NCBI RefSeq assembly: GCF_964204645.1
Contig: NC_134034.1
Coordinates: 11,296,962-11,360,961 of the forward strand
Length of the DNA: 64,000 bases
Direction: 5' to 3'
Source: Tubulanus polymorphus
Lineage: Eukaryota; Animalia; Nemertea
The notes beneath the pieces were generated by a model that saw nothing but the letters and a program-made list of their open reading frames with translations, ran no database searches and was not told the DNA's origin. Positions 793 through 62,328 of the stretch are shown in pieces. How positions within the stretch are numbered: position 1 is the stretch's first letter; each line of letters begins with the position of its first letter. Position numbers and translations under genes: made by a program.

Positions 793-3700
793 ATGGCGAA
801 ATTCGAGGAAGTTTTGAAAGTTTTTCTGGTCCTGTCGACGGGGATTCTAGGCGCGAATTGCGCGGCCTTGAACTCGAATTCATCCGTTAGAATATCCGAG
901 CTAGATCCGGGACTAGGATTGACTCGAGCGGACGGTGTTCCGCCGATAAATCGGCGCGCGCAGCGAGACTCACCCTCGTTATCGTCGTCGTCGTCTGCCA
1001 CGAACGGGAATAATTACGACGACGAGCGACCCCTAGCGGCGGTCGTCGAAAACTCGACCGTCCCGACGCCCGTCGCCGTCGTACGGAAAACGACGACGTC
1101 GTTGAATTGCGACGAGAAAACGCGTCAGATCTCGGAGGAAATACGCCGTAAACTAGGTAAGACATTCCGCCCTCCTCCTACAGAATCTATATACTTACGT
1201 TAGATTAGAGATTGATTGATTGTTTGTAAAAAAAAACACGATTGAATTAATATCGTACTCTTCATCGCTCCCCACATCCTCCCCTTTCTCTCGTTCCCCA
1301 TCACCCTCTCCCTTTCCCTCGCTCGCCATCACCCTTTCCCTTTGTCTCGCTCCCCCACCATGCTCCCCCTCTCCCTTTTCTTACTACCCATGAACATTTC
1401 CCCTTCTCTCGCTCCCCTTTTTTTACAGCCAGCTCTCATCTCTCCCTCTCTCCCTCTCTCCCTCTCTCCCTCTCTCCCTCTCCCCCTCTCCCTCTCTCCC
1501 TCTCTCCCTCTCTCCCTCTCCCCTCTCTCTCTCTCCCTCTCTCCCTCTCTCCCTCTCTCCCTCTCTCCCTCTCTCCCTCTCTCCCTCTCCCCTCTCTCCC
1601 TCTCCCTCTCTCCCTCTCTCCCTCTCTCCCTCTCTCCCTCTCTCCCTCTCCCCTCTCTCCCTCTCCCTCTCTCCCTCTCTCCCTCGCTCCCTCTCTCCCT
1701 CTCCCCTCTCTCCCTCTCTCCCTCTCCCCTCTCTCCCTCTCCCCTCTCTCCCTCTCTCCCTCTTACTGTGTATCCGTTGTAACTGGGGACGTGATGCATT
1801 ACGATACAAACATCCAAACATATCGTGACGTAATGATAGATGGTATTTAGCGAAAAACGAAAATTCGGAACTTTGAATAGATTTCAAATTGAACGGATTG
1901 TCAACGTTTCGATATTTTCAGCGTCGTGATTGTGGGGCGTATTTAACTCCGAGACTTTCATTGCGCGAGATTCCACCTCAATATGTGATTGTATTACGTA
2001 CACATACGTATCATCGTCGCTCTCGAGATGATTAAGCCTCGTATCGTTTTATATATATAAACACCCCACAATATGTCTTTAACGAGGGAAAAAATTGAGC
2101 GTTATATATAAAAACCCCACAAGATGAGGAAACAATCGAGTGAAACATAAATAAACTGCAGATTAATTCTGCCGTTGGTGTCATAAAAACAATCTGACAG
2201 TATTCATTATAGCGCGGCGGCGGTGGCGGCTCGCCTCCACACTAACGAAACCATCGCACATTCAACATGTAATATTACAACAATTCTCAGTGGTTGAGAT
2301 GCGTGTAAACTCATGCATTAGTCAGTGCAGAGTGTTACTGCTATACAACAGTTCGCCACTTAATATGATTTTAATTTCGAGTTTAGAGTCTACATGACGG
2401 CAAAGTGACGAGTATAGGCCTTCATACTGATACTCAGTGATACTCAGTGATACTGGCTGATACTCATTGATACACCGTGAAACTCAGTGATACTGACTGA
2501 TACTCAGTGATACACAGTGAAACTCAGTGATACTGACTGATACTCAGTGATACTGACTGATACTCAGTGATACTGACTGATACTCAGTGATACTGGCTGA
2601 TACTCATTGATACACAGTGAAACTCAGTGATACTGACTGATACTCAGAGATACAGTAAATAAACACTCTCTCTTTGAGACTAAATATACGACATCATGGC
2701 AGGACAGAGTCAAACGCGTTTGTGGGCTCAACGAAAATTGCATATTCATTTCAGATTCAGTCATTCGCCGACGACCAGTTCCTCACTTTCCAGGGTAGAA
2801 GTCGCGCTGCTGAAATCGCAGTTTTCTTTTTTACAAAAAAATGTCGACAAATTCTGCTTAGCACACACACTGTAGCTATTTGTGGCAACATTTCACAATG
2901 CACTTTTCCTTTGCGGCAAAAGTCGGCAAAAATCTGCAAGTCAAACAACGGTTAGTTACTAATGACAGCACTTGACTTCTCCCGGCTTCGTTTGTTAATG
3001 AATGTATCTACTCTCGTGTCGCAGGTCCGGTGAGGGAAAAGAGGGAGCCGGACGTATGTATATAGGGTACAAAAGGAACTTCACTTAAACTTAAGTTGAG
3101 AGTACTTCCCGCGGAAGTACCGCAGTACCGATAACTACAAAATGCCTCTAGAATTTATCGGGTCAAAGCGTCAAATCGTCAATTACCTGATTGCAATTAG
3201 TTGATTACTGACATTTGGAGGATTTTTTAGGATATTAAACTCTTGATTTGTACGGTTTCGTTTACTTTGTGGGAGAAAGGGAAGGTCGGGTTTATTGCTG
3301 TACGTGTGTGGAGAAACTGCGGTTTGATCTGGGCAAAATTGGTCCATTTACGCGTAATTATCGAGTTCTATATCCATCTCTCTCCCCTCTCTCCCACTCC
3401 CCCTCTCTCCCCACTCTCCCTCTCACTGTCAGCCTCTCCCTCTCACTGTCAGCCTCTCCCTCTCACTGTCAGCCTCTCCCTCTCACTGTCAGCCTCTCCC
3501 TCTCACTGTCAGCCTCTCCCTCTCACTGTCAGCCTCTCCCTCTCACTGTCAGCCTCTCCCTCTCACTGTCAGCCTCTCCCGCTCACTGTCAGCCTCTCCC
3601 TCTCACTATCAGCCTCTCCCTCTCACTGTTAGCCTCTCCCTCTCACTGTCAGCCTCTCCCTCTCACTGTCAGCCTCTCCCTCTCACTGTCAGCCTCTCCC

Positions 3701-18700: not shown

Positions 18701-21700
18701 TAGACCGCACAGTTTCGTCGTAGAGGTTTTTCAGTACGTTACCGCGCGCGTCAGAAATTTGTTGTCGTTCGAGAATTTTACATGTTTGAAATTCAAAAGA
18801 TTAACCGTCATTAGAAAATGGTTGGAAAAATGCGCTCGTCGAATTGCGAAATTCGAAATTAATCTAGAGAAAAGGTGACGCTTTTTGGAGAAACGCTTCT
18901 CGCTATAACCCATTACGCGTGGACCTATAGTCAGCCGCCATCTTGGATGGTTGGGAGGAGAGATTTAGAAATTCGTCTGCTATCCAACAACAGGGATTAC
19001 GTCATCATTTCGTGCTGCGTAAATGCGACGGCAATATTGTGTGAATGTTTTTTTCTTTTCAAAAATGAAGAAAAAGATCTGAAAATCAGGTTCCGCGATT
19101 TTACGATGAATAATCTTCACTAAACGTCGGTGTTGAATATTGGCTGTGTATATTTGCTGATTCCGTAGCGCTGTTTGGGACACTGTAAAGATTATTCACA
19201 CCTCCATCCAGCGAACTTTTGTTTGTCTCACGCCGAAACTCGCGGAATTCCAATCGAATATTGTTAATACCTCTGGTGGTAATGTTGATGTCGGTTCGGT
19301 GGTCGCGGTTATAAACGCGTTTTCAATACAACTCGCTGCCAGCGCTAACACATTTCAAACAATTTAACAATTTCGCCTCAATATCGCTAGATCACGGATT
19401 TATCTCGTATTTTTTCTATCTCGAAAATGCCCACGGCCCCGACTGAACACAGTTGCGTGGATACGTTCCCGTCACATTTAGGTAGGTGAACATCTTCTCT
19501 GTTACAACAAGATTCATTCCAGACGATTTCAGATTTTTCTCAGAGTTATCTAGAATTTAGAGATGCCTGCTGTCATGTTTCCCCCTATGACATCATCAAA
19601 ATTCTCGTTCACACGCAAGAACTATGGCTGCCTTCGAAAATTCGCCTATGACATCATTAAATTTGCCTATTCTGATTTGGTCTATAGGCAAGATGGCTGC
19701 CTACGTATCAAGATGGCTGCCTATGATATCACCAAGTAAAACCCTCGCTCAGGAGAAAGATGGCTGTCTTTGTAAATCCACCTATGACATCAGCAAATCA
19801 CCTCTGATCCCGTCTATAGGCAAGATGGCCGCCTTACATTGCACCATCGAATCACGAGCAACATTTTCTCGTGCAACATAACACTCCGGGACGCCTTTTT
19901 ATTCTATAAATTGCCTGCCTTCAGATAGAAAATTCCGGAGTAATCTATCTAGGCCCCCCTTCCCTAAACTCGAAAGGTTCACGTATACAATCGGTTCGTT
20001 ACTAATCACTTCGATGTTAAAGGTTTCTTGACTGAATTCGGTAAAAAGAAAAGTAGGTGGAAATATAGGAGGTACCTGGAGGGAGATAAATAGAAAAAGC
20101 GAAAGTTAATCCGAAGTTTTGAATTCGGATTTTTTTCGGATTCGATTTTCTAGGTTTTTTTATGTGGGTTATTACGTTTTAGCCTTCATATTTACTTGCT
20201 GCGGCCTACACCTCGTATAGCTACCATCGCGTACCTGGGAATGCGCGGTAAGGCTAACCCCTACACTATAAGCCGAAGAGTCTTGGTACTAAAATGTCAA
20301 ACGCGAATCGAATCTGAAAACTGAGAATGTGCACATCACGCGTCGCTTCGGAAAAAAATGGCTGATTTTCTGAGAAACCGTACGGCGAAATGTCACGGAC
20401 AAAAACGACAAAAGAAATTATCTCGTTTTCTGCCAACGCCGTATCAAATTCGTAACTACGAGATTTTTTTCATGTTTTGCTTCAAACGAGTCTCGTCATA
20501 CGTCATACGTCAGTTACTGCGGTAAGCGAGGATCCGATAGGTTCGCTAGTAGTAACTCGGTCTTAAGTCAAAGACTCAATATCATACTGTTTAGGGAGCC
20601 GACCGTTTGATGATTTGTGAATCAAATAATCGGCTAGAAAAACCGACTGTTATTCACGCCACCTAGTGGTGCGTGCCGGAACCGTCATCGTCGAGAGTAT
20701 TCATATATTTTCAATTGATGATGTTGAAGATGGATTCATGGATTTATGGAGGCAGCCATCTTTTCTATAAGCCTTACGCACACAGTTTACACCGGAGTCG
20801 CCCACTGCCGCCGATTATCACATGCCCCACCCAAACAATAGGTTCCCTTCCTGATAGTTACTCCAATTCATCGATATACCGACCCACCTCTGCTCCGGAA
20901 TTCGCTAAGTACCTCGCAGAAAACTTGTTTATCCAGCGAGAGGCTGGTAATAAGCGTACGCAGTTTGTTTTTTCTCCGAGAAACATCCGTAATTATTTAC
21001 AACATGTTCAAGGAGGGAGTACAGGCCAATAATTTGCATCTCTTTCGACTTCGAAGGGAGAATCACAAATCGAATTTTGCGCGGCTATTCTGCGATTTAA
21101 TCGAATTTTTGTCGAAAATGGAAGTGGAAATCGCAGAGATCGCGAGCTGAAACGTCGTTCGGTGAATTGAGAGAAAGTATTAACGGTAATTTAACGGCTT
21201 GTCGATGGCTCTCGTATCGTCTGCCGAGAGGTAACGAGTAGAGTACCGTCGAGTGGAGCGCGGGAATCTCGTCTCGTCTGCGCCGGGCGATGATCGTCGT
21301 CGTCGTCGTCGTCGTCACCGCGCACAGCTCCACCAGATCATCTCCGCGAGATCGCGCGCTCTGAAATATTCACGAATACTCGTTGACACCGATATGGAAA
21401 ATACGAAACGATGTTGTTGATCTTCTACTTCGTAAGCGGAGATAACGATGTGTGAATCTAAGCAGAATATATAATAACATGATTTCAAATGTACATAGTC
21501 AGATAGTCAGTTTAATGCCTGAGTCTCTGTTGTTTAGTTGATATGTCCACGTTCGTATTCATCCGATTATAAAAGCTTACCGATTTCAGGTACCGTAACT
21601 AATTACAGTTTACGGAAGAGAAATTAAATTCATTATCATCGAATTTCTTGTTAAGTCTAGGCTACAGATATCAATAAGATAAAAACCCACTATCTATAGA

Positions 21701-24700
21701 TTAAAAGAATTCAAAAACAAGAACACACCTGACGATGATCTCTAGGGTGAGATCGAAACGTCGTGTCTTCTATATATTTTAGATTGAATAAATAAATTCT
21801 TGTTTTTAAATTCTTTTATTCTGTAGATAGTGGGCTTTCATCTTATTATCCGTTCACCACGTTTGAGTGTGGTTATCGTTCTACTAGGCTTAGAGATTTA
21901 GTCACACACATTCTAAGTATAATATGGTATTTTTGTACCGCAGTGACCGTCTGCGCATGTATAGAACACGTGTATATGATAGAGACTCGGTGGTACCGGA
22001 GAAGGGGGAGGAATCGGTGCGGCTAGAGACGTAAAATCAACGTCAAATTGATCAATTTGACGCGTTACACGTTAGTCAATAATTACACGGTAACCGTCGT
22101 ATCAACGTAACGTAATTAATCAGTTATTACGCGGGTACTAGTTGTAAAAAGATCGATTCGATAGCACAATGCACACTCCTGCGCGGTAAACCCTCTTACC
22201 TTCCTTCTTTCGATGGTGGCTTCTTCGGTACGTGAAGTGCACCGGATTATTAACGATCTATTGTGCGCATCTGATATATCACGGTATCTACTTACGCACG
22301 AACTATCCTCCGAGATCGTCTATATCTCCACCCGGAACAAGCAAGGGAATATTATCTGGACTAATTCTGAATCTGCTAATTGCGTCAATTGTATCTATTG
22401 TTACGAAAAGCGTCGTGGTCATTCTATATGTAAAGCACTTAAAAAAAAAATGAATTATTTTCAATTAAATTATCGTGGTTGATAACATAATAAGTTATTA
22501 CCGTGATAGTTTATTTCTCAAAAATTGTGTAAAACCATCACCGAGATCCGAACTCAATTCGATGGCCTACCAGAACAAATTGCCTCGACAAGCCCTTGCT
22601 TCAATCGAATCAATAGAAAAATGGACCAAAATCGAGGTATTTATTATTGTATCTTTGGACTTAAAAACACAATCGTAGGTTATTTCATGACCTTGCGCGC
22701 ATTACTATAGAATTCTTTTGGTAGCTGAGCAGGGGGGTCACGACCCCTGAAACCTCCCCTCTAGATCCGCGCCTGAATAGCCGGTGTCAATCCGGGCCAG
22801 ATTTTAATCATTCCTAAACGCGTCAATATAATAAACAGCTATTATAAGCATGTTTTTTATTGACCACTAACAGCGGGGGAATTATTTCATATACAGCGTA
22901 GACGATAAAGAACGAATTAGCGCGACGTGCGTTTTATGGTAAAAGCCGCTGAAATATTTATAGTCTCCCCGTCGCAAAACGTGTTCCGTCTCGACGAAGG
23001 GGTATATTCTCGAAAAACATAATCTAATATCGTCTTGTGATTATAGACTGGCACAGACTCGGCGCGGCGCGCGCGTGGACAATTCGTGCTAATTAATTTC
23101 GATCGAGCAGTGCTGGTCACGTTGTCGCGGGGGTTTACTGGCGGGATGGTCACGGAGTGTTTGTCGAAAACCTTCGTTGACGTGCGCGGGATCTTCGAAG
23201 AAGCGGGGTGGGGTCGAACCTCTTGCCAAATCTACCAGATTCTTCCACAGATCTTCGACTCAAAATCTTCTGGATTCCCAATACAGTGTGGGTTTCATTC
23301 TAAATCTTTATCTTAGAATAAAGAAACGACTTTATCTATTTGATTGATTGATTGATTGATTGATCGATTGATCGATTGATTGACTGATTGATTTGAGGTT
23401 TTTGTGCCCCTTATAAACCCACCATCGTTAACAACTGCTGGAACGGAACAGGGGGGGGGGCTTGATCTAATCTTAAAATAGGGATTGACCCTAATTGTTT
23501 AATTGGTAGATTTTGTTAGATTTTTGTTTTGATTTGATGTCCCTTACAGACCACCTAGTACCACCTGCCGAGAGCGGAACAGGGGCTTGATTTTGAAATC
23601 GGAGTTCGGATAATGTTGATTGAAATTTTATCCGAGAGAACGCCGCGTGACACTGGCCCCGGATATTTTCCAAAACACTTTCCCTGGACTAGATCTATAT
23701 AATGATACCCGAGGAAGCCCCCAATTTTTCTTGTCGCTGTGTTAATAGCGTCCGGTCGTGTCTGGTCGAGCAGAGTACAGAGGGGCGCAGACGCGTTAGA
23801 CGAAACATCGAAGCGAAAATGTCACTCAATTTCCGGTAGATTAGTTCTCGTGAGATCATCCGAGCGTTCATTACAGTAAACGGCCATTCGACACATAACA
23901 GGTGCGCGATTCGTCGCCTAAACAGGTGCGCGCGGCTCGGCTGATTCTAAATAATCGGTGCCATCTTGGATTTCGGTCGTCGAATCTCTCGCCAAATCTA
24001 CCAGATTCTTCCACACATCTTTCGACTCAAAATCTTCTCGATACCCCATACAGTGTGGGTTTCATTCTAAATTTTTATCTTAGAATAAAGAATTGTCTTT
24101 ATCTATTTGATTGATTGATTGATTGATTGGTTGGTTGATTGATCGATTGACTGATTGATTGACTTGAGGTTTTTTGTGCCCCTTACAAACCCACCGCCGC
24201 TAAAAATATTGCGATTTAGACAGACCATTCTGTAAATTCAACTGCGCCAATTACGCAACTATATCTGTACTTCGATTTCCGATTTGAAATTCAAACCCCT
24301 GCTACCAATCAAATAGATAACAGGGTCAATCCCTATTTTCAGATTTACAAACAAAACTGAGTTCATTAAATGAATATATATTAGGAACGGATAGAAAAAA
24401 TTGATGCGTTTGGCTTGTCACAATCCGTCGGAATATTGTTGTTTACCAACATCTCGAGAAATCTCGTCATTTACCCTCGAGAATCTCGCGTTGTCTATTC
24501 ATTTAAGCTCAACGGACAATCTTACCGTCACAAATCGAGTCTGATTTCCCAGAAGGCATATCGAGGCTTTTTTGCGGCGTTCAATATACGCGCTACGGAG
24601 ATTACCGAAGATTACCGGAGATTACCGAATACCTCGGCAGACGTTCGTTCATCCGGTTAGAACAACAAGCCATTAACCAATATGAGAAATATTACAATTA

Positions 24701-27700
24701 CGAATCGTATAAGAACTTCGACTGATATAAATCGGCAGGGATTATCGACGGATTATCTCGTTAATCCGGCTATCGGCGTGGCGTAACATGGAAATTAATC
24801 CGTTGTTGACGTGTCGGTATGATTGAGCGATTTGTTATGTGATGCACGCGTTTATGATAATGAATAAGTGTTTAAAGAGAACCGTTTAGAAATAGCACAC
24901 ATTAGACTGGCTACTGTCGGCTGGAACCCCTATAAGTATGTAGCCAGCAACCAGTACTTTTCATATTTTCTTATATTCTCTCAATTTTTCTACTGTCAAT
25001 GTATTTGAATATCAATATCGCCATGGCTTGACCTTCTATCGATATAAATTGTCTTTTTGATGTTGCCATTGATGTACATCGTACCTAAGCAAACCTGCAA
25101 TATTATTCCATTTTGTAAAATGAAATACTATCAAAAACCGCTAGTTGGCCTAGAACAGTTGTAATATCAATAGAATAGATGTGACACGCAAGGTAATCTA
25201 ACTAGAATGTCTGGACTGCCACCTAGCGGGCTAGAATTGTTGAATTTAGATCCCCTAACATCGGCCCTATGGGAATCGCGTCTAGAGCCTTCCTAACATC
25301 GGTCATGGAGCCCGAACATAACAACCCTCGACTCAGATGTTTTATCCAGTCACCAGCCATGCGCGATAATATCCAATCATGAATCACGAGTAATTTCCAA
25401 TACATCGGGAAATTCATTTTTTGCTTCAATTTCGTCCCGATGTAACAACTATCTTTCAAACATCTAAGAGATATCAGTCGATGACGTCATATTATCTCCG
25501 GTCTAGACAGAAATTTTAAATGTTGACACCTCGTATCAGTGGATAGAGAGAGCGGGAGAGAGACAGAGACGGAGAGAGAGGGAGGGGAGAGAGACGGATA
25601 TATAGAGAGGGAGGGGGAGACAGATAAAAGCTGTTTGATTTATATCGTTTGCGTGGAATCTGCACTTGTCATTTCATCAACCAAAAGAAGTTCCATTTTA
25701 TAGAAAATGTAAACAAATTCTATTTTTTTTATGATACCACGTGCCTGACACCTTCCAGCTCATTGCCTCCATCTCCAACACCTTCCAACTCATCACCTCC
25801 ATCTCTAACACCTTCCGACTCATCGCCTCCCTCTACAACTTCCCCCAACAAGCCCCTCCCTTATCCAATACCTCATTGCCTTCCTCTCCAACACCCCCTT
25901 ACTAAAGGTATCTACATAAGACTGGTTAACTTCTTGGTGATTTGTGTCATTCCCAATTACTCTATTTTGCCATTGTTTCTATCTTTATATAAATGTAGTA
26001 TATTGGACTTTGTCTTTCGCGGTTTTTTTTTCATGAAATTTGAATTTCAAAATCAACGTTTACGTTTATAGTATCAACCGTTCATACGACCGTTTAGACC
26101 TCTCATGCCACACTCTCACCTTCTCCGCTCGAGGCACTTGACATAATTTGTCAGTTGTCAATATTCGTTCGAATCAAGAGATTGAACCGCATTTACTATA
26201 AACCTTTAGGCTGGTGTGAATTTCACCGTGAGAAACTGTTAAATTCATTACAGAGTCTAATGTCGTCTGGACTGAATGGCGGGGGGGGGGGGTAGATAGA
26301 TAACCATTGGTGAAGGAGAAATTCCGAAATGTTTCCTTGAGCTGCTGCAGTTTATTCGATGTTTCAACCATATCCGAAATAGTGACCTTCGGGTATTCAG
26401 TACTCTGGCGGATCCGGTTCCACAGTTGTGAGTTGGAGTTAAAGTTAACTCCGAGTTGAAATTAGATCATTTTGCAATGAGTTTGAGTTAGATCTTTTTA
26501 ACTAGCATGGATCCTGCAAAGATGACTATTAGAATATAGTTGAAACGTTGAATAAACTACACTAGCTCAAGGAATACAGTATTCCTGAAGATGACTATTA
26601 GAATATAGTCGAAACGTTGAATAAACTACACTAGCTCAATGAATACAGTATTCCTGAAGATGACTATTAGAATATAGTCGAAACGTTGAATAAACTACAC
26701 TAGCTCAATGAATACAGTATTCCTGAAGATGACTATTAGAATATAGTCGAAACGTTGAATAAACTACACTAGCTCAATGAATACAGTATTCCTGAAGATG
26801 ACTATTAGAATATAGTCGAAACGTTGAATAAACTACACTAGCTCAAGGAATACAGTATTCCTGAAGATGGCTATTAGGATATAGTTGAAACATTGAATAA
26901 ACTACACTAGCTCAAGGAATACAGTATTCCTGAAGATGACTATTAGGATAAAGTCGAAACGTTGAATAAACTACACTAGCTCAAGGAATACAGTATTCCT
27001 GAAGATAGAATATAGTTGAAATGTTGAATAAACTACACTAGCTCAAGGAATACAGTATTCCTGAAGATGTCTATTACGATTAAGTTGAAACGGCGAATAA
27101 ACTACTATAAGTTTTAGGAAACTAGAAGGGCTTTAAAAAGATTTTATTGCGTGATTTCTTATATAACGTGTCGAGTTTGAGTTAGAGATCTTTTAACTAG
27201 CATGGATCCTGCGAATATGACTATTAGGTTGTAGTGGAAACGTTGAATAAACTAAACTAGCTCAAAGAATACAGTATTCCTGAAGATGACTATTAGAATG
27301 TAGGCGAAATGTTGAATAAACTAAACTAGCTCAAAGAATACAGTATTCGTGAAGATGACTATTAGGATATAGTCGAAACGTTGAATAAACTACTGGCTCA
27401 AGGAAAATTATCGGATAACTCGTTCCCCATTTTCCTGACTTTGCCTATGATGATATTTTACTGTGCCATTTGCACGGGTTCGTTCGGGTTAAGATCGTGA
27501 CATATCGCACAGCGCTTTACTCTACTAAATCTCCACTTTTCCGTGATTCGGTCGCCTGTGGTTCTCGGTACGGTTGTCCGCAGGAGTCCGGCTATTAAGT
27601 ACGTGTTGGAATTTGAACCTTATTTTATCGACGTTCGAACAGGCGAATTACTGTAGCAATTCTTAATCTAAACAAGATATGAACGAGGACGAACATGACA

Positions 27701-33700: not shown

Positions 33701-36700
33701 TAAGGTAACAAAAGATGGATGTGTGTAAATATGTACTGTTTGTCTAACATAATTTAAAGACATCCACAGGTCTAAGGGCTGTGAGAAAGGGGGATTCCCT
33801 GGAAAGGTAGACATATCGATGCTTTATGTGCGGACTGTAAATTTTTGTCTCTGCCTTTATAACTGTATCACTATAAGACATCCGTAAAGTGTTTATTTAA
33901 TACAGCTTTAAGTAATGTTGCCTCAATCACGCTAAAAGATTGATTGGTTCGTTTTGTTTTCGCAGAACACGATAATACACACATTAAGATTTCTTCCACA
34001 AAATATCAATGAAATATGATATTGAAATGCATGAAATGAAATGAAATTATATCATATTCATTATATCATTTGTAAAAACTGGCGATAAAGCTGTCAGCTT
34101 AAAGTAATGATAAACATGCTCGTAATACTGAGTACGGAGCGACATTCTTTTTGATATTTCGCAATCGATTTTCAGATGATTAAAAACGCATTTAATCGTT
34201 GTATATTTTCAGATAGGAGACAGTTGTATTGTAACAGTACGGATGACTCGTTGTCGTGTTGGCCGACGACGGTTGCCGGGACCCTGGCGTCGATTCCCTG
34301 CCCTCGATTCATCGAAGGGATTCCCTATAACACTTCCAGTAAGTTTGAGCCGAATCGGAAAATGGAAAATACCCAAACGTATTCGATGGTTTCGCACGAA
34401 GCCCTGAGAATATTTTGCTATGATAAGATATGATCCATTTTTCGTATATAGAGTTTTTACTGAAATAATGAATATGCAACAGATAAAGTAATATTATTCA
34501 AGGAAAGACTTTTCATTTGACTTTTTTTCAAAGTTCCACCAGTACGTAATTCGCTTTAGAAATGAGTAGATTTTAGAAAATAGAATGTTTTTTTTATTAA
34601 CCAGAGAACGTAACGAAATGGTGTTTGCCGACTGGTCGCTGGGAGAGGTTGGCCAACTATTCTCAATGTGAACCGCTACAGAATATAGACGAAATCTCAG
34701 AAATAGCCGTACGTATTTCTAAACACTTCGTTAACCAGCTATCCCACCAGATGGCGCAACGAGCACTCGGTCTTGCGTTGTGAAAATTAGTTCATCATTT
34801 TTCAATGAACTTTCAACTGAATATTTAGACTCCCGAATCAATGCATTTTCAAAGCACCTACTAAATGTACAATAAATTCATTCTTCTACTCGGATATCGG
34901 TGCTGTTTTTTGATTTATTTGAAATAAACTTCTTTCAATCGTAATCGAAATGTAGTACGATAAATTGAATGCGGAAGACCGAGTAACTACTAGCGACACC
35001 AGGCGGATCCTCCCCTGCCATAAGTGGAATCCTCGATTGCCACAGTAGCTATGCGGGTACCCCATTAGTGGACAAACAATTACTACAGTTTAATCTAAGA
35101 ATGCTTTTATATAAATTATCATATTTGAACTGAAAGATATGCATTTATCAATATCATGATATCTAAAAACTAGAGAATCTAATCACGTAATGAACAATCG
35201 CACAATATTGATGGTATTAAAAGCTAATCTTGCCGTCAGTTTTGACTGGATTTATCTAAATCCCTCTTGGTACAAACAGTATATGGCAGTTTCTCGATGG
35301 AAATGGAATTTAGATAAATTCGGTCGAATATATACCCAGATGACTTGTTGGGCGATTAAATGAAAAGTCGATCGAATACCCTAGTCAAATACCATCCAAT
35401 AACGGGATTATTCATTATCCTCTACACTGAGATCTGTCAATTTAGTTATGTGTGTTATTTTTAGGATGGCGAAACCGAAAAGAATATCGTGGTGACTATT
35501 TACTTCGTCGGATTTGGTATCTCTTTATTAGCGCTGTGCGTGGCGTTGAGCATATTCCTGCATTTCAGGTAAGACGCGCGGTACCAAATGGCGACCACCA
35601 GCTATTCTATCTCAATCTAAATACACGTTGTGTTTTAAAAAGACCCACAGATTTATTCCTCTTTCTTTTTCGCAGGAGTTTACGGTGCATTCGTAATAAA
35701 GTCCATTGTCACTTGATCGCGACGTTTATTTTGAGAACGGTGGCTTGGATCATGTTGACGTCGATTATGGGCACGAGCGCCCGAGAGACCGCTCCGTGGG
35801 TACGTATCTAACCGACTACCTGTTGAAGAACAGGACTTCCCGTTTCAGGAAATAGTAACTTCCTTAATTGATATTAAACAGAAATATAAGCCTTTAATCT
35901 CGATCGATAGAACACTATATCCGTGTTGACGCGATGTAGAAAGAATCCCACAATGATAAGAAAAAGTCCGAAAATGTAATTTCGAGACGTTTCGACTATA
36001 TCCTAATAGTCATTATTCCTAATGACTATTAGGATATAGTCGAAACGTTGAAATAAACTACTATCTCGAAGTTACATTATCGGACTTTTTCTTATCATTG
36101 TGGGATTCTTTCTACAAGCCTTTAATCTATTAAGTCTTCAGGCATCATTCAGTGCAACTGGCAATTCTTATGATACCCTTTATTTGGCGGGGTTGCCAAA
36201 TTCATATTTCTCTCAACAAGGGCAAACAACCCCTAGAAACCTAGAGATGGGAAAGTGTCGGGATGGTCTATCGAATAAAAACTTTTTTCGTTAATCATTT
36301 CGATTATTTATTTTCAGTGGCTATGCACGATTCTGACGGTCATTCACAACTACCTTCAAATGACGAACTTCTTCTGGATGTTCGTCGAAGGGTTGTATCT
36401 ACATACGATCATAGTCTGGGCGTACTCCGCCGAGAAAATCCGTTTTTGGCATTATGCAATGATCGGATGGTGTAAGTATTATTTCTTTTACTACTTGAAT
36501 ATTCGGCAGTAGAAATCCCTCATTTCGGATTCCTCGGCGACTCCGAGACTAAAAATCGAAATTCAAATTTGTAACGGTCGGAATAGTTCGTTAGGGAGTA
36601 TGCGCACGCACACGCGTCGTTTCGTGACGTTTAAACAAGTTTTCGATGTTAATTTCACCGTGAAACAAGAGATAAAAACGTCGCCGCAGCAGCCTGGCGA

Positions 36701-57100: not shown

Positions 57101-60100
57101 CCATGTCAATTGATTACTGTTACGCGCAAAACTTTCCGCGCAAAGTCGACTCGAAATTCTGATCGATCGATTTTATGTCGTCGATACCCGGTAAAAACTA
57201 CCACGAGTCACGGTACAAAGGGGCAAACCATGGCGTCAAGTCTGAAGAATTTCAAGAAACTGTTCTTATCGATTCGTATTAGTGACCCCGACCAGACTCG
57301 ACTACCACTTAGGAATGTAGAACTACTTTATCGTGTTACGACTGATTTCGACACCGACAACTTGACCTTGAATCTAGGGGTGTTTTTTTTCGTGGCGAAA
57401 AGATATCGCAATAAATATCCGGACGTACAATGAAAGTTTGTTGCAAGTTGAAAGTTTTACGCTGCCATTAATGCTCAGTTAACGCGAAAACAGTTTTCAG
57501 GAGAATAGATTTGCTTAATCTAACTCAAATTCAATAACTTCTTAATATCGCTGCCAAATTCGTTTTAATGCCATGTTTTTCACTGGTCCCGACCAAGTTT
57601 TTCGAGGTTTCAAATTCGTTTTACCTTAACTCCTAACTCTTTAGCGAACACGGGGGCATTGATGAGATTCATTTCACAGCCGCTAGTTTTCAGTAACCCG
57701 GCACAAACTGCTGCTCCTAAATACGAGTTGGCTTTCACTAATTCGGGACCTACGAATAAGAAATTAGAAAAACGCTTAGAATATCGGACAGTCCTTTCTG
57801 TAATTCAACGTTGTTGTAAATAGATTCAGAGACCATTTCCAGTCCTGGGCCCAGTTCCACAGTTCTGAGTTAAGATTTGACTCTGGGTTAACTCATTGAA
57901 AATGAACTAAATTTAACTCGGGGTTAACCCTAACTCACGACCGCGGAACTGGGTCCATTTCGATCCATTTCGTACGGCGTTCTAGTCACCCTTTTTAAAT
58001 CGGCAGATTTTGCGTAAGTACTTAAAATGGATGGTCCCTGTTTTCTTACGTTTCGGGAGGAACCCGTTTTCAGAGCTCATTTAACAAAGGGTTTCTCCAA
58101 TACAGCTCTGTCGCGGGACTCGATATTAGGAAAATCTTACCGAATGATTTAATCGTCACCTCCGTCGTATTGTCGGCCGCTCCGACCATAGCCGTAGCTA
58201 GAACACCCAAACCGTTGCCTACGGCTACCCACGGTTTACTGGCAGGACTGAGCGCGTTCGACATCGCCGGCGCGTTGATCTTCATAGACAAATAGAAAAA
58301 CAATTTCTTAATTCAACAAGAAGTTTTTTAGAGCTTCATGGAGAAGGGTAGGGTTCGAGGTGAGGTGGGGTGAGTTGAGGTGTGGTGAGGGGTGGGTTGA
58401 GGCGTGGTGAGGGGTGAGTTGAGTTGAGTGAGTTGAGGTGGTGAGTTGAGGTGTGGTGAGGGGTGAATTGAGGTGGGGTGAATTGAGGTAGGGTGAGTTG
58501 AGGTGGGGGTGAGTTGAGATGGGGTGAATTGAGGTACAGTGAGGGGGGGTTGTAGTGGGGAGAGAGCTTGTGGTGGGGGTACATTGAGGTGGGGTGAGGG
58601 GGTTATATTGCTCACCGCTCCGAATAAACTCTTCCCGTTGACCGTGTCAACGAATTGTTGCGCGATCTCCTCGGCAACGCGACTCTGGGCCTCCGCCGTA
58701 CTCGCCCCCAGGTGCGGCGTACTCACGACCAGCGGGTGCTGCACCAGCTTCTGATTGGTCGGTGGTTCCTAAATTCAAATATGCGATCAGTAAAATACAC
58801 CTTTTAAAATCCAACTTTTTTGCACATAAAAATTTCCTAAGATTCGATTCTTTTTTAAACTTACTAAAATTCAGATTTTTTTTTTTCACGAAAAAAACTT
58901 CCTAAAATTCGATTTATTTTTTCAAATTAGATTTTCAAATGAATTTTTTTCCAAAAGGCTCACCTCGATGAAGACGTCCAATGCAGCCCCTCCGCACTGT
59001 CCGGCATCCAGGGCGGGGATGAGAGCATCCTCGTCAATAATTCCACCTCGTGCCACGTTCACAACCCGTAAACCTTTCTTACATTTGGAGAAAACCTCTT
59101 TACCGATTAAATCTGTGCGAAATTGAAACATTTCAAATCAGTTCCCTTCAATCGCTTACAGGGTGGCGCTACTTTTATTAGACTCGCTTTTCTTCCGACT
59201 ATTCCCTGTAATGCACGTTGTTTACCCTGACTGGATCTGCTAAGAATCCGATCAATTAACCCTTTCAGGGCGTCTACACCGCAGTGCGGTGTATAAATCA
59301 GTGATGGATTTTGCCAGTACACCGCACTGCGGTGTATTGATGTAATTAGTAATTTGTAATTATCTCTATTGAAAAATGGCAGAAAGTGTCAAACATAGTG
59401 AAATACTAGTAACTAACGATACACCGCACTGCGGTGTAGACGCACTATAGTGGTATTCCCATTGTTCAACACACTAGGGTGGAATTTTCTAGAATTTTCA
59501 AATTTTCTCCAGCACTATAGGGTATTAATTAGTCAGCACTGAAAGGGTTAACACAGTCAAATACGTAGGACATAGATAGAAACTGTTTTTTTAAGCACGA
59601 TCCAGCAATCTCAACATTTATCGCTGAACTTTCCCCAATTTTAAGCTTTTTTAAAAAATCCCTGACTTTTTTAAGGAAAGAAATCCCCGACTTCCAGTTA
59701 AACGGCCACACTAGTGTCATAACTCATTTCAAAAAGAAATGTTTCAAGTTCACGCGATAGTATTCTTACTGCGGGTTTGCGGTATCAACGGGGTATGGAC
59801 GGTCACGTAGTCGGCCTGGGGCCAGATCTCTTCCAGAGGGAGCCACTGTACGCCGAATTCGGCGCTTACTTCGCCGGGAATGATCGGGTCGAAACCAATC
59901 GTCTGAAACGCAGAACGAAAAACCGTTTCGAAAAAAAACTTACGAAAACCTTTCTGTAAATCGAATGCAAAAAATATTTCTCAAAAATTCCGGAAAAGGG
60001 TCATAACAAAAAATGACTTCGCCAGAATATGCTTTCATTCTTATGAATCATAGAAAATTTGTTAAGATCCTCGGCAGACCTTGCCCCGTCCTCCCTAGCC

Positions 60101-62328
60101 TCGCCCCGCAATAACTTACCCTCATTCCGAACGACTGCATTCGTAGCGCCACCTCTTTTCCGATTCGCCCGAGTCCGATAATCGCGAGCGTTTTACCCTG
60201 AACCTCGTTGCCCATGTATTTCTTGCGATCCCATTTTCCGGCTTGCATCGACGTGTGACCTTGGGGAATATGCCGACTCAAGGCGAGTATCATCGCACAC
60301 GTGTGTTCAGCTGCACTGATAGTATTACCACCCGGAGTACTTGACATTGAAATTGAAGAAAAAATTTTTTTTTTTTCAAAAATGTCTCTCACAAAGTTAA
60401 ACTCAAGATTTTTATTCAAAGGATTTAAACTCGATTTAGTTTTCTGCAATTAGTTCGCACGGGGTGATGACCACTTGTTAAAGAAACACGTCCCAAATTT
60501 CTTCCTTTTATAACAGACAATTTCCCGAGTGGATCTAAGGAATTTCTAGATTTAAAATGTTACAATTCATTCATTTTTTATTGAATCACGTATTTGTAAA
60601 GAAACGCGTGGTCAATAGCGAATTATTCGAATTCCAAGAGTTCTTCCAGATTTTTTTCTGATTCCCTGAGTTTTCCAGATCATTATCCACCAAAAAGGTG
60701 ACCTTTTGTAAAGGGCATGTAAAGCCAATGAGCATATTACATAAGGATTTGAAGCTGAATGAATTATTACGGTATTAAAAATGTTTATTCGAAGATAAAT
60801 GAGTTGGTAAAGTGAAAAGCAGATGAGAGCCCCTTGTAATCCAATAAATGAATGGTTTCTTTTTCAACTTACTTCATGACGATGACGCCTTTTTTCGTGG
60901 CTGTTTTCGTATCGATATTATCGACTCCGGTTCCCGCTCGTCCGATAATCTTTAGATTCGTCGCCGCGTCGAGAATTTCGCTCGTTACTTTCGTCGCCGA
61001 CCGCACGATCAGACCATCGTAATTCTGCGCGCAGACGGACGGAAAGATTTAGAAATTTACGATAAGTTCTTTTTTCAAACAAGAATTGATTAGGCCCTAT
61101 TATTTTCATGCAGGGTTAGTTTAACAAGGTTGATTCAGAGCTAGAATCAAAATTCTTTCATTTCTAAATCACATGAGCATTTTTGGCCCGGAATAATTGG
61201 TCACACGGGTGCCAAATGGGCCTAAGCCTGTTAGGCCTGGGCCAAATTCGGTCCGACCAAAAACGTCAGACCAGGCCCGAGCCAAATTTTAGCACCAGAC
61301 AAATGATTGTTTGAATTGCAACTGGCACCGAAAATGATCCACTTAGCTTTGTTTGAGCATTGTTGAGTATTGAGTGAATGGTTTGCGTGTGAACGCGCTC
61401 TCTAATTAGGCACTGGCCAAATTTGGCCCAAGCCTGATCCGAGCCAATTTGGCCCGGGCCAAATCGTGTCCGTGCGATTTTACGCGCGCTAGCAATCCCA
61501 ACACCTTGTTCCCTGACTATATAGTTTTTTACATATTCCCTGAATTTTTTAAAGGAAAAAAATTCCACGACTTTTACCTGATTCCCAGGTAGCCTCTCTT
61601 TCTGTATACAAATATACTCCATTAAACTATCTTAATTTTAAATTGGCGGAAATATTTTTGTACAAAAACTGAAGAGTTGCTTATCAATTTATATTGCCGA
61701 GTTGGTATAAAAAGATTTAGATATAGATTTTTTTACATTTTACTAATACAACTTAATAAATATTTGGTCAGTAAATTTTATGGAATTAATCGGGACAAAT
61801 AGTTTCGCTGAATTGATAATCAAAATGTCTCGATAACCAGGCATTTTGATCGATTTAAAAATTGATAAGGCCTTACATGTTCGCTAGTTCGCTAAATGAT
61901 GACAGCTTGGGATAGTTTACAATTTTACACCATAAGTTAGCTATCTGAATAATTAGCTATTTTATAAGTTAAGTTTTTAGGAAAACCAAAAAATGTTTGG
62001 GTAGGTGCATTTGAACTTCTTTTAAATTAATAATTACTGAAATTTATAAATAAGTTGATTATCAACTGATCACGGACACTTTTTTAATTCGAAGAATTTA
62101 ATCATGCACTGCAGACATGCATAGTTAGTTGATAACTACCTTAATTTCGTCGATCAATTGCTGTTTTGACAATTTCGTATTTTTCACGACGTCGATTCCG
62201 TTTTGTTTTAGAATGTCCACGCATTTCGGGTCGACTTCGTCGCTAATTAACACGTTCTTAATTAAAACAGGCATCGCGTATTGAGTTTGTAGAGAGCGGG
62301 TGTGAATTCTGACGACACGCGTTAACAT
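54101..62328 (-). CDS. PHGDH: D-3-phosphoglycerate dehydrogenase; 10 exons, 551 aa from ATG 62328 or 533 aa from ATG 62274
   Basis: Exons on - strand: 62328-62140, 61024-60873, 60339-60120, 59902-59770, 59112-58964, 58768-58616, 58279-58141, 57749-57625, 55063-54835, 54267-54101; total 1656 nt. Motifs [56 protein letters not shown] (Rossmann fold), [36 protein letters not shown], followed by a C-terminal regulatory region. Confidence 0.96.
54393..54663. mobile_element. piggyBac-type MITE in a PHGDH intron
   Basis: TTAA|CCCTTTCAGTGC ... GCACTGACAGGG|TTAA. Homologous copy at 59260-59547. Confidence 0.8.
56000..56140. repeat. 16-bp minisatellite GTTGACAGGTTTAATC, about 9 copies
   Basis: Seen directly. 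Confidence 0.85.
57845..57956. mobile_element. MITE family A copy in a PHGDH intron
   Basis: Near reverse complement of 5767-5879 with the same TIRs. Confidence 0.7.
58345..58602. repeat. G-rich GTGAG/GGGGTG low-complexity tract filling PHGDH intron 6
   Basis: Seen directly. Confidence 0.85.
59260..59547. mobile_element. piggyBac-type MITE, second copy, in a PHGDH intron
   Basis: TTAA|CCCTTTCAGGGC ... GCACTGAAAGGG|TTAA. Internal ACACCGCAGTGCGGTGT palindromes shared with 54393-54663. Confidence 0.8.

Follow-up and report, generated by a model that had tools for sequence, protein, structure and literature searches.

The window analysed here is a 64,000-nucleotide stretch of DNA from the nemertean Tubulanus polymorphus. 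Its plus strand carries exons of a class-B receptor and, upstream of them and in the same orientation, a tandem array of short repeats. The exons were recognised in two open frames, each searched on its own; one contains a hormone receptor domain (PF02793) and the other a secretin-family 7TM segment (PF00002). The sequence-only reading had placed the array in intron 1 of a neuropeptide-receptor gene. The receptor exons downstream on the same strand agree with this placement, but the candidate exon 1 (793–1203, plus strand) gave no family match, so the location in 'intron 1' is only likely. A rhodopsin-type receptor was also considered and rejected: motif and hydrophobicity searches of the window and a genome search with PF00001 gave no match in the window, and the gene is of the secretin family.

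Tandem Repeats Finder (TRF) reported a single plus-strand array at 26519–27405, with a period of 69, 12.8 copies and 81% matches. The 69-bp unit consists of helix I (UAUUC/GAAUA), the core CUGAAGA, one extra U, helix II (GACUAU/AUAGUC), GAAA and CG-UU, which is the fold read independently from the letters before this analysis. The strict core-to-GAAACGTT pattern matched at 26585, 26654, 26723, 26792 and 26930, on the plus strand only, and the proposal of a 69-nt tandem hammerhead array on the sense strand was thus borne out. The features of the locus are as follows.

26300..26410, minus strand: inverted, heavily decayed 3'-end fragment of the Penelope-like family, head-to-head with the array (alignment)
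26479..26518, plus strand: leader of about 40 nt before array block 1 (direct reading)
26519..27099, plus strand: array block 1, about 8.5 units of 69 bp (TRF, unit table)
26580-26623, 26649-26692, 26718-26761 and 26787-26830, plus strand: four identical intact minimal hammerheads (pattern, unit table, covariance model)
26856-26899, plus strand: damaged unit, ACGU changed to ACAU, palindrome lost (36.6 bits)
26925-26968, plus strand: near-intact hammerhead with an A.A mismatch in helix II (unit table; 46.8 bits)
26994-27030, plus strand: damaged unit, 7-nt deletion of the helix II 5' strand (17.4 bits)
27056-27099, plus strand: damaged unit, several changes (15.3 bits)
27088..27164, plus strand: diverged remnant of the element tail after block 1 (alignment to the start of the Penelope tail, direct reading)
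27165..27212, plus strand: second leader copy, a local duplication of the block start (direct reading)
27213..27405, plus strand: array block 2, about 2.8 units, none competent (TRF, unit table, covariance model)
27275-27318, plus strand: block 2 unit with AUGU for ACGU, palindrome lost (unit table)
27344-27387, plus strand: block 2 unit with C3 changed to G (unit table)
27388..27420, plus strand: short tail remnant after block 2 (alignment to the Penelope tail)
34176..34433, plus strand: open frame with hormone receptor domain (PF02793, E 1.2e-9)
35452..35811, plus strand: open frame with secretin-family 7TM segment (PF00002, E 1e-5)

The unit table shows four perfect units, one near-perfect unit and others that are damaged, in line with the earlier count of four perfect units among decayed ones. 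Each of the four intact units (26580–26830) scored 52.3 bits (E about 1e-14) with a covariance model for which only the other hammerhead families of the same genome were used, the 69-bp family being excluded. In these units the cut is predicted to fall after GUU, for example between 26618 and 26619. Five window units have an intact CUGAAGA, GAAA and GUU cleavage triplet (NUH). The A.A mismatch in helix II of the near-intact unit (26925–26968) is a common variant of the satellite, present in 57 of 203 units genome-wide. The C3G substitution carried by one of the block 2 units abolishes hammerhead cleavage (PMC11167929). Two smaller elements that had been described for every unit, an AATAAA after the GUU site and a hairpin (G)GAAUA-CAG-UAUUC(C), are both present on direct reading. 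The duplicated block start was found as well, the leader at 26479–26518 recurring at 27165–27212; this leader is specific to the locus and is absent upstream of the other 21 arrays inspected. The inverted fragment at 26300–26410 comprises a tail ending ...CACCAATGGTTAT and one degenerate hammerhead unit. Its reverse complement aligns to the Penelope hammerhead and tail, with a minus-strand unit match at 26353–26405. A target-site duplication of at least 8 bp was sought around the window insertion and was not found. The window array is a partly decayed copy of a genome-wide repeat, in which 4–5 of about 12 units are intact.

An ordinary minisatellite might resemble a hammerhead by chance, and the Rfam hammerhead models, which gave no match at the gathering threshold in the whole window or at E up to 10 in 26300–27600, could be taken in that sense; the scans returned only chance miRNA-like matches on the palindromic junction. 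This miss is, however, expected, because the curated models expect a helix III and the unit has no helix III hairpin, its ACGU being predicted to form helix III only between two copies. The general hammerhead motif pattern matched 4225 times in the genome compared with 32 times for a reversed control, and is therefore far above chance. Pairing was then assessed across five sequence families of the genome. Over the 11 pairs of helices I and II, 89.4% of cells were paired, against 67.8% after shuffling, and none of 500 shuffles reached 89.4%. Eight of the 11 pairs change on both sides, with slid controls at 25–46%. The ACGU palindrome and the extra U were invariant in all 13 aligned sequences, and helix II was 6 bp. 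At least four other sequence families thus keep the same hammerhead architecture with covarying helices. Covariation of the two helices among genomic copies had been named beforehand as a check. It was found between Penelope families but not among the satellite copies, where variation is without compensation, and this last point is the other one that would suit a chance likeness. Such a likeness is nevertheless contradicted by the covariation across families, by the 52 bits given by the independent model and by the identity of the motif with that in the terminal repeat of reverse transcriptase (RT)/GIY-YIG elements, described below, and we regard it as extremely improbable. As judged by descent, the 69-bp unit is a genuine minimal type-I hammerhead of the Penelope kind.

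The repeat is dispersed on many contigs (133 scored matches, 351 candidates). The junction between satellite units occurs 1558 times in the genome, equally on both strands, compared with 0 for the control. An ORF adjoining one array contains GIY-YIG and RVT_1 domains, and led to an autonomous Penelope-like element (PLE) whose repeat is about 2857 bp long and whose ORF of 800–833 aa encodes RT and a GIY-YIG endonuclease (full ORF: RVT_1 5.7e-10, GIY-YIG 1.5e-5). The PLE is present in >100 copies; many of these share 99% identity and have an open frame of 833 aa. In all intact copies an identical hammerhead follows the ORF, about 300 nt after the stop codon and about 95 nt before the 3' end, and recurs 2857 nt upstream, so the kinship with Penelope elements proposed for a minimal type-I motif with a palindromic helix III was confirmed. 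A 167-bp derivative without an ORF, consisting of a 14-nt leader, the hammerhead and the tail only, forms tandem arrays of its own. Its tail-to-hammerhead junction occurs 198 times (control, 0), the spacings being 167, 236 (167+69) and 334. The 69-bp unit is a sub-repeat of this derivative, made up of the hammerhead and 25 nt, and arrays of 69-bp units alternate with tails. Inverted pairs are found at other loci of the genome, and at one locus (L010) both sides carry a 13-bp direct repeat. The shared inverted flanks had raised the possibility of a TIR, foldback or Helentron-type DNA transposon; this was rejected, as the flanks downstream of the arrays are a PLE-type tail and the inverted pairs are head-to-head partial copies. 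Read from these sequences, the 69-bp repeat derives from the end of a Penelope-like element, the link being direct, and in the PLE lineage the hammerhead is a genuine feature that evolution has maintained.

Penelope minimal hammerheads have a long helix II, a helix I of 4–5 bp, an unpaired nucleotide 5' of helix II and no helix III, and occur in opposite-strand pairs (PMC4209133). Our motif resembles the PLE hammerheads of Cervera and De la Pena (2014, PMC4209133) in its type-I form with a 6-bp helix II and 4–5-bp helix I, in the lack of a helix III hairpin and the short palindrome pairing only between two copies, in its place within a repeat flanking an RT and GIY-YIG ORF, in its frequent close opposite-strand pairs and in its thousands of copies per genome. 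It differs in that here the 44-nt motif plus 25 nt itself constitutes a 69-bp satellite. The tandem hammerheads in PMC4209133 are about 3 kb apart, as whole elements, with scattered copies in addition, and do not form such short arrays. In the Anolis Poseidon PLE (PAc; Frangieh et al. 2024, PMC11167929), as here, the hammerhead lies near the start of the ORF and near the site that defines the 3' tail, in a tandem or partial tandem arrangement; the PAc ORF, however, begins inside the hammerhead, whereas the ATG of the present PLE lies about 105 nt past the predicted cut site.

Animal non-LTR retrozymes (Cervera and de la Pena 2020, PMC7229834; Li, Clavereau and Pollet 2026, preprint 10.64898/2026.07.22.740005) are likewise dispersed tandem repeats with one type-I hammerhead per unit, a description that fits the 69-bp and the 167-bp arrays. 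They also share a low GC content, hammerheads that need a neighbour for helix III, and a proposed origin from PLE terminal repeats with mobilisation by PLEs. The 167-bp parent unit falls inside their classical range of 150–450 bp. The 69-bp unit is below that range but within the consensus lengths of 51–972 bp reported in the preprint, so the earlier statement that 69 nt is smaller than known retrozyme monomers did not hold. Unlike retrozymes, the unit is of the minimal PLE type with no defined loop 1, and lacks the loop 1–loop 2 tertiary contacts of their canonical hammerheads. It has the marks of a PLE derivative, namely continuity with the terminal repeat of the RT and GIY-YIG element, a 3' tail and head-to-head inverted partial copies. 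The double hammerheads of newt satellite 2 and viroids (Forster et al. 1988), as summarised in PMC4209133, are similar in their weak helix III and in that activity is expected only with two tandem copies sharing an extended helix III; theirs is a looped helix III of 1–2 bp in units of about 330 nt, compared with a 4-bp ACGU duplex only in a window unit of 69 nt. Overall, the architecture matches that of the published Penelope minimal hammerheads and non-LTR retrozymes, and the kind of element is one already described.

Dimer cleavage by Penelope minimal hammerheads was reportedly described by Lunse, Weinberg and Breaker in 2017, as cited in PMC6765202. Pairing of adjacent units, as the sequence-only reading proposed, is feasible in our folding predictions: two tandem units can form a double hammerhead as a fully nested fold, with an energy 4–7 kcal/mol higher than the minimum free energy. 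When four units were folded as one RNA, the 5' strand of helix I was predicted to pair at about 99% with the GAAUA linker of a different unit, and a probability of 0.001 or less was obtained for helix I. The competition with stem I that had been raised as a caveat is thus predicted to be even stronger than feared, and the junction palindrome, which is specific to the satellite, is predicted to sequester helix I. With helix I so sequestered and only 4–5 of about 12 units intact, self-cleavage would be expected to be weak. Tertiary contacts, the order of folding during transcription and assistance by proteins are outside the nearest-neighbour model, and one PLE hammerhead has been reported to be protein-assisted (PMC11167929). 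The array might be active in vivo, counter to the view of the hammerhead as a passenger.

If it were active, the family could be an ultra-small retrozyme, in which double hammerheads release 69-nt (and 167-nt) monomers that are circularised, and the PLE RT copies the circles or multimers, such that the arrays arise at the RNA level. The nested dimer fold makes this feasible in principle, although the predicted energy cost and the sequestered helix I weigh the other way. Variation within the satellite is similarly divided. Among 203 sampled units, 154 retain the core, ACGU and H17, as a working ribozyme would require; yet the 109 variant cells in helix II include 14 that are still paired and 1 that is compensatory, meaning that uncompensated variants are common. 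Divergence was 0.7% in the core, 1.6% in the linker and 4.6% in helix II, in a sample that is biased towards young copies and carries no usable conservation signal. The tail, through which the PLE enzyme would act, is dispersed along with the arrays, and the preprint derives retrozymes from PLE terminal repeats with units down to 51 bp (10.64898/2026.07.22.740005). However, none of the array 5' ends inspected lies at the predicted cleavage product end GAAUAAAC, many lying at the helix I 5' strand, and variant patterns are duplicated in blocks inside arrays, which indicates duplication at the DNA level. PLE minimal hammerheads are also poor cleavers in vitro, dimers included (PMC4209133), and PLE insertion in vitro does not need cleavage (PMC11167929). 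Three sequencing runs that contain the repeat sequence behave as genomic DNA contigs. We consider an active retrozyme unlikely, and think it very doubtful that 69-nt or 167-nt units are transcribed, cut between neighbours and ligated into circles that serve as Penelope enzyme templates for new arrays. Were this true, no smaller circular RNAs with a ribozyme would be known from animals than these 69- and 167-nt circles, and the decrease from 2857 to 167 to 69 would show a retrotransposon reduced almost to its ribozyme alone. The satellite hammerhead is most likely a passenger.

The array could instead act on its host gene, with co-transcriptional cleavage of the intron and the AATAAA signals leading to premature termination or less receptor mRNA. 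It has the orientation of the downstream receptor exons and four adjacent intact units, and an AATAAA lies just past each cut site; but this hexamer simply belongs to helix I and its flank, and the parent PLE has it too. Most units at the locus are dead, the active form is disfavoured by the predicted folding, and the intron itself is only likely, exon 1 being a candidate. The array is a member of a family with at least 1558 units equally distributed between the strands and, as one decayed copy of such a dispersed family, did not evolve for the receptor gene. An effect on the receptor gene is accordingly very unlikely. Separately, four adjacent identical intact units could reflect maintenance and not recent local duplication, which would run counter to the passenger view.

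The reading that we favour, and consider quite probable, is that the array represents an old insertion, now partly decayed, of a non-autonomous PLE derivative, with the hammerhead a passenger that has no specific host-gene role. The PLE would have given rise to the ORF-less 167-bp derivative, and the hammerhead plus 25 nt inside this derivative would have been tandemly multiplied as the 69-bp piece. The elements carrying arrays were presumably dispersed in trans by the PLE enzyme through the shared tail, as their structure suggests, and the arrays may then have grown, shrunk and been homogenised locally at the DNA level. PLE insertions often lie head-to-head with an inverted fragment, and the window copy would have landed in this way, on the sense strand and ahead of the exon that encodes the hormone receptor domain. 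Helix III of the hammerhead could be built by two copies only; at this locus any self-cleavage is predicted to be weak, and a specific function for the gene is not expected.

For the receptor gene, the array probably does not matter, being a decaying transposon remnant in a likely intron. The family, on the other hand, is a clean worked example of the recent proposal that animal tandem hammerhead repeats are non-autonomous PLE offshoots. Three stages coexist in one genome, the autonomous PLE, the 167-bp ORF-less derivative and the 69-bp sub-repeat, and share the ribozyme, with the tail common too. This makes the genome a good place in which to ask experimentally what the minimum size of a ribozyme-bearing mobile RNA is.

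Tandem Repeats Finder reported one array at 26519-27405 (period 69, 12.8 copies, 81% matches), which a strict hammerhead pattern matched on the + strand only. The 69-nt unit consists, in order, of UAUUC (helix I), the CUGAAGA core, an extra U, helix II (GACUAU/AUAGUC, with a 6-nt loop), GAAA, CG, UU, GAAUA (helix I) and a 25-nt linker. Its parts are arranged as in a type-I hammerhead in which helix III is cut down to the self-complementary ACGU and the cleavage triplet is GUU. In every unit AATAAA lies 3′ of the predicted cut site and a junction hairpin is present, while the 40-nt block start of the array has a second copy at 27165. The unit table reads as follows.

26580, 26649, 26718 and 26787, + strand: hammerheads of four identical perfect units
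26856 and 27275, + strand: damaged units, palindrome lost
26925, + strand: unit with an A.A mismatch in helix II
26994, + strand: damaged unit, 7-nt deletion
27056, + strand: damaged unit, several changes
27344, + strand: damaged unit, C3 to G

Two partial units are also among the damaged ones. The four perfect units are mutually identical throughout, including a linker variant common to them, which fits recent local duplication. The sequence-only reading had described just such an array, with four perfect units and a damaged remainder, a duplicated block start, AATAAA after the cut and a competing junction hairpin, and all of these were found.

Rfam gave no hammerhead matches, as expected for a motif without the helix III hairpin. 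The pattern CUGANGA-N12-24-GAAACGUH had 4225 matches in the genome, versus 32 for the reversed control. The matches fell into several sequence families that have one architecture in common, the extra U and ACGU among its features, but differ in helix II (GACUAU/AUAGUC, GAUCUC/GAGAUC, GGCUGU/ACAGCC and GGCUAA/UUAGCC) and in helix I (UAUUC/GAAUA, ACAC/GUGU and CCAC/GUGG). In an alignment of 13 hammerhead sequences drawn from these families, the 11 helix pairs were 89.4% paired versus 67.8% after shuffling (0 of 500 shuffles as high), with both sides changed in 8 of the 11; sliding the partners as a control left only 25–46% paired. A covariance model, R1, was trained on the other hammerhead families alone, excluding the 69-bp family. 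Under this model the four perfect units each reached 52.3 bits (E about 1e-14); scores fell progressively across the damaged units. The earlier proposal of a type-I fold lacking a helix III loop and carrying an extra U is right. At the level of sequence, the pattern excess, the covariation and the independent covariance model settle that the motif is a real hammerhead. The covariation in stems I and II that the earlier reading had named as a check was thus present across families; within the satellite, variation in helix II was uncompensated (109 variant cells, 14 still paired, one double change), and the A.A mismatch variant occurred in 57 of 203 units.

A query of two units had 351 candidates, spread over many contigs, of which 133 became scored matches. 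A satellite-specific junction occurred 1558 times in the genome versus 0 for its control; these occurrences were evenly divided between the strands, and most lay towards the ends of contigs. The 69-bp arrays crowd towards contig ends, for example at 31.2-31.4 Mb on C1, 30.7-31.7 of 31.9 Mb on C2 and 21.2-21.9 of 23.0 Mb on C6; this clustering suggests subtelomeric enrichment. The flanks of 22 arrays had a conserved downstream sequence in common, often with an inverted copy upstream. That these flanks were the inverted termini of a DNA transposon was considered and dropped, as the conserved flank proved to be a Penelope-type tail, the 3′-terminal sequence that follows the hammerhead in a Penelope-like element. 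An ORF near one array encodes GIY-YIG and reverse transcriptase domains (RVT_1 5.7e-10 and GIY-YIG 1.5e-5 for the full 800-aa ORF) and has more than 100 genome copies, many 99% identical with 833-aa open frames. In every intact element copy an identical 44-nt hammerhead is present twice, once about 300 nt past the stop codon and a second time 2857 nt upstream; the tail between hammerhead and element end is about 95 nt, and the upstream copy has an ATG just past the tail-end point. The link to Penelope-like elements, which the earlier reading drew from other systems, is direct in this genome. Other Penelope families (69% and 61% protein identity) adjoin other hammerhead families, for example at C1:15223456 and C1:13433114, a few hundred bases from Penelope ORF matches. 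At one array locus on C9 (L010, 609854-612991), a compact head-to-head insertion consists of an inverted tail and one unit, followed by 3.7 units and a full tail; the same 13-bp direct repeat on each side is a candidate target-site duplication of the 69-bp family.

Folding was predicted at equilibrium, with tertiary contacts and proteins not included. The predicted minimum free energy structure of the isolated 44-nt segment was helices I and II. For two tandem units, a fully nested classical double hammerhead would be possible, in which each junction forms its helix I with a strand of the neighbouring unit and the two ACGU segments pair with each other, at 4–7 kcal/mol above the minimum. When an RNA of four units was folded, the 13-nt junction palindrome was predicted to pair with that of another unit, which would keep the 5′ strand of helix I engaged about 99% of the time and leave helix I a probability of at most 0.001. 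The parent element is without this palindrome and has an extended helix I instead. Penelope minimal hammerheads are reported to show low cleavage in vitro, dimers and trimers included (PMC4209133). For the Anolis Penelope, the enzyme is reported to insert in vitro without need for cleavage, a search for RNA-seq ends at the hammerhead site in vivo found none, and there was some protein assistance of cleavage (PMC11167929).

The array lies in two blocks. Block 1 is followed by a tail remnant, a leader (here the block start) and the short block 2. No target-site duplication was found around this insertion. Neighbouring features are as follows.

26300-26410: inverted decayed tail and unit, head-to-head with the array
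34176-34433, + strand: open frame, hormone receptor domain (E 1.2e-9)
35452-35811, + strand: open frame, secretin-family 7TM segment (E 1e-5)

The two domains on the downstream + strand identify the host gene as a class-B peptide receptor, with the ribozyme on its sense strand, as had been claimed. The supposed first exon (793-1203) had no family match, so the intron position also claimed is only likely. Cutting of the receptor pre-mRNA by paired units, the role proposed for the array in its host gene, is unsupported. The three sequencing runs containing array sequence behave as genomic DNA: their contigs across the unique flanks showed no differences (depth about 31, 26 and 9), and their summed depth in the repeat was enormous. 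A separate repeat, short and of high copy number, makes up the spacer that divides the array from the inverted fragment (26388-26475; summed contig depth about 20,000–43,000 in run X1 versus about 31 in unique flanks); it has a small palindrome inside.

A second, sequence-distinct minimal hammerhead lies at 21724-21767 (+ strand, GUC site, helix II GAUCUC/GAGAUC), built like the 69-bp unit and with both the extra U and ACGU. It occupies a gap of 73 nt that separates two inverted arms of 51 nt, 90% complementary to each other (21673-21847), and is probably what is left of a head-to-head copy from another Penelope family. Just 3′ of the 7TM frame, R1 detected an inverted hammerhead-like pair (36014-36054, +, 32.1 bits; 35986-36013, −, 28.9 bits); this pair is likely to be the receptor gene's third Penelope remnant. 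The neighbouring minus-strand gene at 58328-60449 has D-isomer 2-hydroxyacid dehydrogenase open frames (NAD-binding domain E 3.8e-19) and is probably phosphoglycerate-dehydrogenase-like. Genome-wide, at least 140 rhodopsin-type 7TM domains lay in single open frames, from 2679 first-look candidates; for a genome of 268 Mb this is a large number of receptor genes that appear to lack introns.

At two loci the tail end was followed by 14 nt and then a hammerhead. There were 198 occurrences of this junction and none of its control, and they were often spaced 167, 236 (167+69) or 334 bp apart. One whole unit measured 167 bp and comprised the hammerhead, about 109 nt of tail and the 14-nt leader. Tails alternated with arrays of 69-bp units. 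Arrays of the 167-bp unit were seen on C8 (e.g. 196185-197122, 372244-373780 and 794549-795416), with occasional 236/334-bp spacings. The 69-bp repeat appears to derive from this ORF-less Penelope derivative, and these forms make a series in one genome: the autonomous element (about 2857 bp), the 167-bp derivative and a 69-bp sub-repeat without most of the tail. Three unit variants, common to all, make mosaic arrays at different loci, and some arrays contain block duplications of several units, which points to dispersal of ready-made arrays together with local, DNA-level duplication.

By class the motif is a Penelope minimal hammerhead, and it is a predicted ribozyme. Classical non-LTR retrozymes have units of 150–450 bp, canonical hammerheads and demonstrated RNA circles (PMC7229834); the present array differs from them in unit size (69 bp) and ribozyme type. 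In the broad sense it is of the non-LTR retrozyme kind, and it agrees with a broader scheme set out in a 2026 preprint, where retrozymes with units of 51–972 bp are derived from Penelope terminal repeats (10.64898/2026.07.22.740005).
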